DNA of 63,957 bases, counting the filler, from Octopus bimaculoides (lineage: Eukaryota), in the NCBI RefSeq assembly GCF_001194135.2. It is 7 parts of 4 records of this genome, joined end to end, with 100 filler letters (N's around TTAATTAATTAA, not from the genome) between each part and the next. Parts side by side here need not be neighbours in the genome. Positions count along the whole stretch, not along the records: positions 1 to 8,004 come from NC_068996.1; 6 more parts are not named here. The stretch is one strand, 5' to 3'. Below, in pieces: positions 6,936 to 8,004 of the stretch (the stretch's first letter is position 1; each line of letters starts with the position of its first letter). The notes under the pieces are model-generated. The model had not been told where the DNA came from. It did not search any database and worked only from the letters and a program-made list of their open reading frames with translations. Position numbers and translations under genes: made by a program.

Positions 6936-7115
6936 TATATATACAAAAATAAGAGGAATGACCAGCAAAAGTGGACTCCTATATGCTAGAAATAGATGCC
7001 GAATCATCTAACCACGAAAAAATATGTTCTCAGTAAAAAATTAGCGACACAACAGACTGTAAGACGGCAAGACAAATGAAAAAATACTAAATAAAAAATT
7101 AAAAAAACGATTAAC

Positions 7116-7180
7116 CTACGTACCATGGTTTCACCTGTTAAAATTTACATAAGTAAATATCTGCAGGATCATCAGCGTAG
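7116..7180 (-). ncRNA. Type I hammerhead ribozyme, copy 1
   Basis: Minus strand reads CTACG-CTGATGA-TCCTG-CAGAT-ATTTAC-TTAT-GTAAAT-TTTAA-CAGGT-GAAAC-CATG-GTA-CGTAG: canonical CUGAUGA/GAAA core, 5-bp stem I, bipartite stem II, palindromic stem III ACCATGGT, GUA cleavage between 7121 and 7120. Confidence 0.85.
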
Positions 7181-7647
7181 TCTGTCGATTTAAAAATATA
7201 ATTTCCAGAACTAGACATAAGACGTTCACCCGAAAGGGAGCACGTGTAGAGTTCTACAAATTACATTCAGTGCATCCCTTCAAATGTCTTCAATCTGGCG
7301 TGCTAAGGCCGGAAATAACTCTGCAGTTAATAAATTTTTACAGCTAATTTACCGGTTTGAGAACATCATTATTTAAAATTTATTAATAAGAGTAGAAATT
7401 GATATTAATCAATTAAAACCAGTGGTCTAGCATATTAAAAAAAAACCGAAGATTAAAATTATATTACTTACAAAAATAAGAGGAATGACCATCAAAAGTG
7501 GACTCCTATATGCTAGAAATAGATGCCGAATCATCTAACCACGAAAAAATATGTTCTCAGTAAAAAATTAGCGGCACAACAGACTGTAAAAGGGCAAGAC
7601 AAATAAAAAAAAAAAGCTACATAAAAAATTTTTAAAAAACGATTAAC

Positions 7648-7712
7648 CTACGTACCATGGTTTCACCTGTTAAAATTTACATAAGTAAATATCTGCAGGA
7701 TCATCAGCGTAG
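7648..7712 (-). ncRNA. Type I hammerhead ribozyme, copy 2
   Basis: Identical 65-nt sequence to copy 1, offset by 532 nt; predicted cleavage between 7653 and 7652. Confidence 0.85.
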
Positions 7713-8004
7713 TCTGTCGATTTAAAAATATAATTTCCAGAACTAGACATAAGACGTTCACCCGAAAGAGAGCACGTGTAGAGTTCTACAAATTACATTC
7801 AGTGCATCCCTTCAAATGTCTTCAATCTGGTGCGCTAAGGCCGGAAATAACTCTGCAGTTAATAAATTTTTGCAGCTAATTTACCGGTTTGAGAACATCA
7901 TTATTTAAAATTTATTAATAAGGGTAGAAATTGATATTAATCAATTAAAACCAATGGTCTAGCATATTAAAAAAATCCGAAGATTAAAATTATATTACAT
8001 ACAA

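Follow-up and report, generated by a model that had tools for sequence, protein, structure and literature searches.

The window analysed here is a 63,957-nt stretch of Octopus bimaculoides DNA, and its first 8004 nt (from NC_068996.1) end in a tandem array (nt 6942–8004, 1063 nt) of two head-to-tail units of 527–532 bp. A repeat search returned three sets of in-register direct repeats, at nt 6942–7084/7469–7611 (start-to-start spacing 527), 7074–7373/7606–7905 (spacing 532) and 7438–7473/7969–8004 (spacing 531), and pairwise alignment of the units gave 16 substitutions and three indel events over 537 columns, or approximately 96.5% identity. On the basis of these repeats and the alignment, unit 1 extends over nt 6942–7468 (527 bp) and unit 2 over nt 7469–7999 (531 bp), both being read on the minus strand, with unit 1 the 3'-most in the sense of the ribozyme described below. 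The longest run of identity between the units is 135 nt and has the ribozyme inside it. The array is absent from the output of Tandem Repeats Finder because the longest period covered by that program is 500.

The sequence TACAA forms the unit start at nt 6942, 7469 and 8000, and with the piece stopping at nt 8004 the visible array amounts to exactly 2.0 units plus 5 nt. These last five nucleotides (nt 8000–8004, minus strand; TACAA on the plus strand) possibly begin a third unit that is cut by the end of the piece. The piece ends in the same phase as the array starts at nt 6942, and this could reflect either an assembler break at a repeat boundary or a true two-unit array. At the other end, reading of the sequence and the last columns of the alignment of the units place an (AT)4A junction (nt 6935–6943) between a LINE fragment and the array, overlapping the first bases of unit 1. 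The boundary of the array is uncertain by about 10 bp, because this junction resembles the unit's own end (TATATTAC), and the junction could represent microhomology rather than a microsatellite target. The repeat search detected no terminal repeats beyond the units themselves. The unit has a GC content of 31.6% and no detectable coding potential: its longest stop-to-stop frame is 64 aa and has no Pfam match, and its concatenated stop-to-stop frames matched nothing in a collection of 5.8 billion proteins. A preliminary description of the locus, made by reading the sequence, had proposed an array of ~530-bp head-to-tail units that encode no protein, with a third start (TACAA) at the join, and on these points it is borne out. 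It had also placed the unit start at a (TA)n run, of which the AT-rich junction remains, shortened to (AT)4A and overlapping the unit.

The adjoining LINE fragment and the rest of the piece

Immediately to the left of the array, and outside the element, lies a decayed jockey/CR1-like LINE reverse transcriptase (RT) fragment (nt 5990–6934, plus strand, the start being approximate) that is truncated at both its 5' and 3' ends. It was delimited by its disrupted frame, a weak RVT_1 match, its homologues and an alignment of its C-terminus, contains several frameshifts and stop codons, and is the sole RT in the piece. An Argonauta hians protein (45% identity) and an Octopus 'jockey-like' RT are its best homologues, along with numerous unnamed sequences from invertebrates. 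In the C-terminal alignment, the LINE ORF ends at ...FKTKLD..., 35–50 residues before the conserved ...PDEP...NSL... of intact relatives, and the LINE is thus cut, by the array or by a deletion. With its ORF ending 35–50 codons early, the array is therefore not the 3' UTR of this LINE. A tandemly duplicated LINE 3' UTR was accordingly rejected as an identity for the repeat, the ribozyme also being on the opposite strand, and a tRNA-derived SINE was discarded as well, there being no tRNA genes present. A Pfam search of open segments of at least 55 codons revealed no Penelope RT or GIY-YIG domain in the 8-kb piece. The arrangement expected of an autonomous Penelope-like element, an ORF for RT and GIY-YIG domains flanked by repeats, does not occur within the piece, which ends at nt 8004.

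The remainder of the piece consists of transposable element debris and microsatellites, and the array sits in a transposon-rich stretch of the octopod genome. At the left end (nt 1–597, minus strand), an open frame of 199 codons, cut by the start of the piece, encodes part of a Pif1 2B-domain helicase (Pfam, E = 5.8e-17), of a type typical of Helitron-like elements. The best named relatives of this fragment are from Octopus sinensis (78%) and O. bimaculoides (65–75%), and at the DNA level it shares 81% identity with an O. sinensis locus. A 134-nt inverted repeat (nt 1355–1488/1497–1630), the arms of which are 98% complementary and 8 nt apart, is followed by a gap of 35 N (nt 1631–1665) and flanked by perfect 103-nt direct repeats (nt 1244–1346/1666–1768); the region nt 1244–1768 represents a foldback element or, alternatively, an artefact of scaffolding in the draft assembly. 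Further along, a 164-codon open frame on the plus strand (nt 2231–2722; ...WFFSDEKKF...NRW...) gave no Pfam match at E<=0.01, and we take it to resemble the remnant of a Tc1/mariner-type transposase. A sub-threshold Rfam match to U4 snRNA (nt 3106–3163, minus strand; 33.3 bits where the gathering score is 46, E = 1e-4) lies beside a gap of 13 N (nt 3094–3106) and may be a U4 pseudogene fragment. An interspersed repeat at approximately nt 4305–4700 recurs in other sequences of O. bimaculoides (83%, with several copies within 40 kb), O. sinensis (74%) and Argonauta hians (~81%); with its terminal (TA)n/(TATG)n run, it has the appearance of a SINE or MITE-like element present throughout octopods. 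Long microsatellites of (AC)n, (TG)n, (TA)n and (ATAC)n occur at nt 680–875, 3187–3310, 4454–4504 and 5676–5999. They yield dozens of spurious Rfam miRNA matches (e.g., mir-3149 at 82 bits), all below the gathering scores, and these miRNA-family matches were rejected as microsatellite artefacts.

The hammerhead motif and its predicted folding

On the minus strand, both units contain the same type I hammerhead motif of 65 nt, at nt 7180–7116 (copy A) and 7712–7648 (copy B). It reads 5'-CUACG CUGAUGA U CCUG CAGAU AUUUAC UUAU GUAAAU UUUAA CAGG U GAAA CCAUGG U A / CGUAG-3', where the slash marks the predicted cleavage site. Copy A, recognised by reading of the sequence, folding and a descriptor search, comprises helix I (nt 7180–7176 paired with 7120–7116), the CUGAUGA core (nt 7175–7169), helix II (nt 7168–7133), GAAA (nt 7132–7129), the helix III palindrome ACCAUGGU (nt 7129–7122) and A17 (nt 7121), all on the minus strand. 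Copy B, identified by reading, alignment and the descriptor, is identical in sequence and has its A17 at nt 7653. The order of elements is that of a type I hammerhead (helix I 5' strand, CUGANGA, helix II hairpin, GAAA, helix III, U16.1, H17, cleavage site, helix I 3' strand), with three helices round the core and helix I open. Neither unit lacks any part of the catalytic core (C3 U4 G5 A6 U7 G8 A9, G12 A13 A14, A15.1-U16.1 and A17). Helix I consists of five Watson-Crick pairs (CUACG/CGUAG), and helix II occupies 36 nt, made up of 4 bp, a 5 x 5 internal loop and a 6-bp hairpin. Between A15.1 and U16.1, before the GUA cleavage site, sits the palindrome CCAUGG, so that helix III of a monomer can have at most 2 bp and a CAUG tetraloop, while two copies together can form 8 bp.

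A type I descriptor written for this study and run on both strands of the 8004 nt found exactly these two sites, with H17 at nt 7121 and 7653. Cuts at 7653/7652 and 7121/7120 would release a monomer RNA of 532 nt (nt 7121–7652, minus strand). In the motif, the pair closing helix II (10.1/11.1) is U.U instead of the conserved G-C. The preliminary description had given all of these features, namely one identical minus-strand hammerhead per unit with an intact CUGAUGA/GAAA core, a 5-bp stem I and a palindromic stem III, the two cleavage sites with their 532-nt product, and a non-canonical U.U at the base of stem II. Sequence reading, folding and the descriptor agree on the first, the H17 positions reproduce the second, and the U.U is read directly from the sequence.

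The G10.1-C11.1 pair is highly conserved, if not universal, in canonical and Penelope-type hammerheads (PMC4209133). The same U.U is found in HHR_Amex2, a retrozyme ribozyme of the axolotl, which is active: 22% of the monomer is cleaved within one hour, and the dimer cleaves much better (PMC7229834). In vitro, the minimal hammerheads of the Penelope type cleave with low efficiency (PMC4209133), and for one Penelope-like element insertion in vitro did not require cleavage by the ribozyme (PMC11167929). Rfam 15 returned no hammerhead family at E<=10 when searched with the full 8004 nt, with nt 6900–8004 (1105 nt) or with nt 7100–7200 (101 nt), and a snoZ159 match over the motif (E = 9.5) reflects merely UGAUGA. 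The silence of Rfam is likely due to the 36-nt helix II together with the U.U.

The predicted fold of the 65-nt monomer contains helices I and II and no helix III (-13.5 kcal/mol, z = -1.9). Folding of two copies with RNAcofold returned a double hammerhead at -37.0 kcal/mol, as against -27.0 (2 x -13.5) for two monomers, in which both helices II are present, helix III is an 8-bp intermolecular duplex and the helices I form in trans. A read-through transcript was also modelled (631 nt, minus strand, nt 7730 to 7100), and its unconstrained minimum free energy fold pairs both ACCAUGGU segments across 532 nt. By these models, the dimer is thermodynamically feasible. The 532-nt unit has 58–60% of its bases paired as a linear or circular RNA (58% in the circular fold), and the minus strand is more stable than shuffled sequences (z = -3.46). 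The plus strand folds at least as well (z = -4.44), and self-pairing therefore does not identify the functional strand.

Chance expectation and the search for relatives

The frequency of such motifs by chance was estimated from 60 Mb (both strands) of first-order Markov sequence with the composition of the 8004-nt piece. A relaxed descriptor (helix I of at least 4 bp, helix II of at least 3 bp, and any 0–12 nt between A15.1 and U16.1) gave 33 matches in the 60 Mb, equivalent to 5.5e-7 per base or 0.009 per 8004 nt. When the quality of the observed motif was required (helix I of at least 5 bp, helix II of at least 4 bp and a palindromic loop 3), the 60 Mb of composition-matched random sequence contained none, and the expected rate, obtained by scaling the relaxed rate by the extra requirements, is ~2e-9 per base. 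This is negligible for a single window of 8004 nt and amounts to a handful per Gb-sized genome, and the context of the motif therefore matters. Here, it occurs once per unit in a tandem repeat and with a helix III palindrome, which is the setting of real animal hammerheads. The two copies do not differ within the ribozyme, which the preliminary description had considered suggestive and not significant; with 19 events distributed over 537 columns, the probability of this is 0.086, in agreement with that assessment, and the identity of the ribozymes is not evidence of selection. As to covariation, the sole two copies are identical across the motif.

Known copies of the repeat are the two near-identical units at this one locus. 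Applied to 100 kb of actual DNA sequence, of which 83 kb came from octopods (Octopus sinensis, O. bimaculoides and Argonauta hians), neither the relaxed nor the observed-quality descriptor found a match, and the unit has no copy in the octopod sample. Metagenome contigs scanned with an 18-mer yielded five matches, none of them with a CUGAUGA context, and they are therefore chance matches. A gapped 25-base pattern had no match among viral contigs. Retrozyme sequences are reported to be species-specific (PMC7229834), so that absence from other species says little. In the literature searched, the links between hammerheads or retrozymes and octopus or other cephalopods were confined to a count of 235 Rfam Hammerhead_1 matches in the giant squid (PMC6962438) and general statements on the Penelope-like elements that cephalopod genomes carry (PMC8557442). 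The present sequence is apparently undescribed, and the kind of element is already well known, molluscs included.

Interpretation and comparison with known systems

The array fragment is best read as a non-autonomous, non-coding hammerhead tandem repeat, that is, a non-LTR retrozyme, from a family in which cleavage as a dimer and circle formation operate, a combined reading to which a probability of roughly 0.6 is given; its identity as a non-LTR retrozyme, taken without the mechanism, deserves somewhat more confidence. The array has several features by which non-LTR retrozymes are recognised, namely one hammerhead per head-to-tail unit, non-coding sequence of low GC content (<45–50%), no LTRs and a self-paired unit. 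The preliminary description had called the locus retrozyme-like, and its structural anatomy (type I hammerhead with a complete core and palindromic helix III in a non-coding, AT-rich tandem unit) and the pairing of helix III in the two-copy folds uphold this. The array does not belong to the adjacent LINE, and no Penelope ORF lies in the piece.

The mechanism envisaged is extrapolated in all of its steps from the described retrozyme family. The minus strand would be transcribed across at least two units. A monomeric helix III (2 bp and a CAUG loop) would be too weak, and the neighbouring ACCAUGGU palindromes would pair instead, forming an 8-bp helix III and a double hammerhead. Each predicted ribozyme would then cut after GUA, at 7653/7652 and 7121/7120, releasing the 532-nt RNA with a 5'-OH and a 2',3'-cyclic phosphate, which a host tRNA-type ligase could circularise. 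An RT acting in trans, most likely that of a Penelope-like element, would copy the circle by a rolling-circle mode and so give rise to new tandem arrays. A bolder proposal, which we consider tentative and rather doubtful, is that the locus belongs to a live, previously undescribed cephalopod retrozyme family, whose obligate-dimer hammerhead variant (U.U at 10.1/11.1 and a 36-nt helix II) escapes annotation by Rfam and whose long, 532-nt unit is expressed as an abundant circular RNA.

Several other explanations were weighed against the retrozyme reading. The array could be a dead relic, its hammerhead inactivated by the U.U at 10.1/11.1 and an overgrown helix II and its copies produced by unequal crossing-over or replication slippage, as in a low-copy satellite. 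The lack of an Rfam match, the non-canonical 10.1/11.1 pair, the non-significant identity of the ribozymes (P = 0.086), the sight of only two copies, and a neighbourhood that is a graveyard of decayed transposable elements are all compatible with such a fate. However, neither copy has lost any of the 13 core and flanking positions, helix I pairs perfectly and the helix III palindrome is without flaw, the ribozyme falls within the 135 nt that make up the longest stretch shared unchanged by the units, and a U.U is tolerated in the active axolotl ribozyme (PMC7229834), which makes a relic unlikely. Decidedly improbable is the proposal that the units are pseudo-LTR copies of an autonomous Penelope-like element whose RT/GIY-YIG ORF lies past nt 8004, upstream in the minus sense. 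In its features the hammerhead is of Penelope type (PMC4209133), Penelope-like elements do form partial tandems with the ribozyme in the pseudo-LTR (PMC8557442, PMC11167929), and the piece is cut at nt 8004, placing the upstream side beyond view; yet tandems of Penelope elements repeat the whole or 5'-truncated element, coding sequence included, whereas no ORF remnant is present between the two consecutive complete units and no Penelope-like element domains occur anywhere in the 8 kb.

Chance would mean that CUGAUGA...GAAA and its complementary flanks occur by accident in an AT-rich tandem duplication of the ordinary kind. At 5.5e-7 per base, the relaxed descriptor would match thousands of times in a Gb-sized genome, such genome-wide abundance of relaxed matches was a problem in an earlier survey as well (PMC4209133), and Rfam is silent; but motifs of the observed quality are absent from 60 Mb of random sequence (~2e-9 per base expected) and this one has a helix III palindrome and lies in a tandemly repeated sequence of a few hundred bp, the one context in which genuine hammerheads of animals occur, so that coincidence is highly improbable. 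A tandemly duplicated 3' UTR of the adjacent plus-strand LINE can be considered next to negligible. The LINE frame does reach the first bases of the array, and a stop codon (nt 6950–6952) falls inside unit 1, but intact relatives run 35–50 residues further, to ...PDEP...NSL..., the LINE is full of frameshifts and stops while the units share 96.5% identity, the ribozyme lies on the other strand, and an Argonauta LINE locus shows no similarity to the unit.

If the hammerhead of the retrozyme-like array is active, cephalopods would join the animal groups that make ribozyme-processed circular RNAs, and the motif would provide a natural case of a hammerhead in which helix II is very long and its closing pair is U.U. 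Activity would also mean that annotation by covariance models misses this type, Rfam having recorded 235 Hammerhead_1 matches in the giant squid (PMC6962438) and nothing here. Were the proposal of a live family true, cephalopod annotations would systematically undercount self-cleaving ribozymes.

Hammerhead-bearing satellites have been known since 1987 and the retrozyme class since 2020; among the former, newt satellite 2 has units of ~330 bp and cave-cricket pDo500 of ~500 bp. The hammerhead-bearing satellites, which besides these two include Sm-alpha of Schistosoma (PMC4209133), resemble the octopus array in having tandem units of a few hundred bp, in the case of pDo500 of similar length, and a type I hammerhead that processes multimeric transcripts. 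They differ in their thousands of copies and demonstrated cleavage, the octopus array being two copies as read, with a predicted ribozyme. The minimal hammerheads of Penelope-like elements (PMC4209133) share with the octopus motif a short helix I (4–5 bp), a larger-than-usual helix II, and a palindromic 15.2-16.2/loop 3 for which action as a dimer is predicted. In contrast to them, the octopus motif has U.U in place of the conserved G10.1-C11.1 and, where they have a single additional nucleotide following A9, it carries an unpaired U flanking helix II on either side, and no RT/GIY-YIG ORF adjoins the array within the piece.

The closest counterparts are the non-LTR retrozymes of animals, which are low-GC tandem repeats with a type I hammerhead in each unit and are expressed as self-cleaved linear and circular RNAs (PMC7229834). 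According to a 2026 preprint, they derive from Penelope pseudo-LTRs, and vertebrate consensus sequences range from 51 to 972 bp (10.64898/2026.07.22.740005). The octopus unit (527–532 bp) is longer than the 170–400 nt of invertebrate retrozyme RNAs and falls within the vertebrate range. Its helix II, interrupted by an internal loop, takes up 36 nt where 4 bp is canonical, it has no evident loop 1/loop 2 motif for tertiary contacts, and the known copies are two, at one locus. Shared with the retrozymes are the head-to-tail, non-coding, low-GC repeats with one type I hammerhead per unit, the self-paired unit RNA, a short helix III with a palindromic loop that favours dimers, and a U.U at the base of helix II as in the axolotl HHR_Amex2; a mollusc example, from a mussel, is already known. 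Since the class, its tandem architecture, dimeric ribozymes and the link to Penelope have all been described, the general picture of retrozymes and Penelope-like elements is unchanged by the octopus array.
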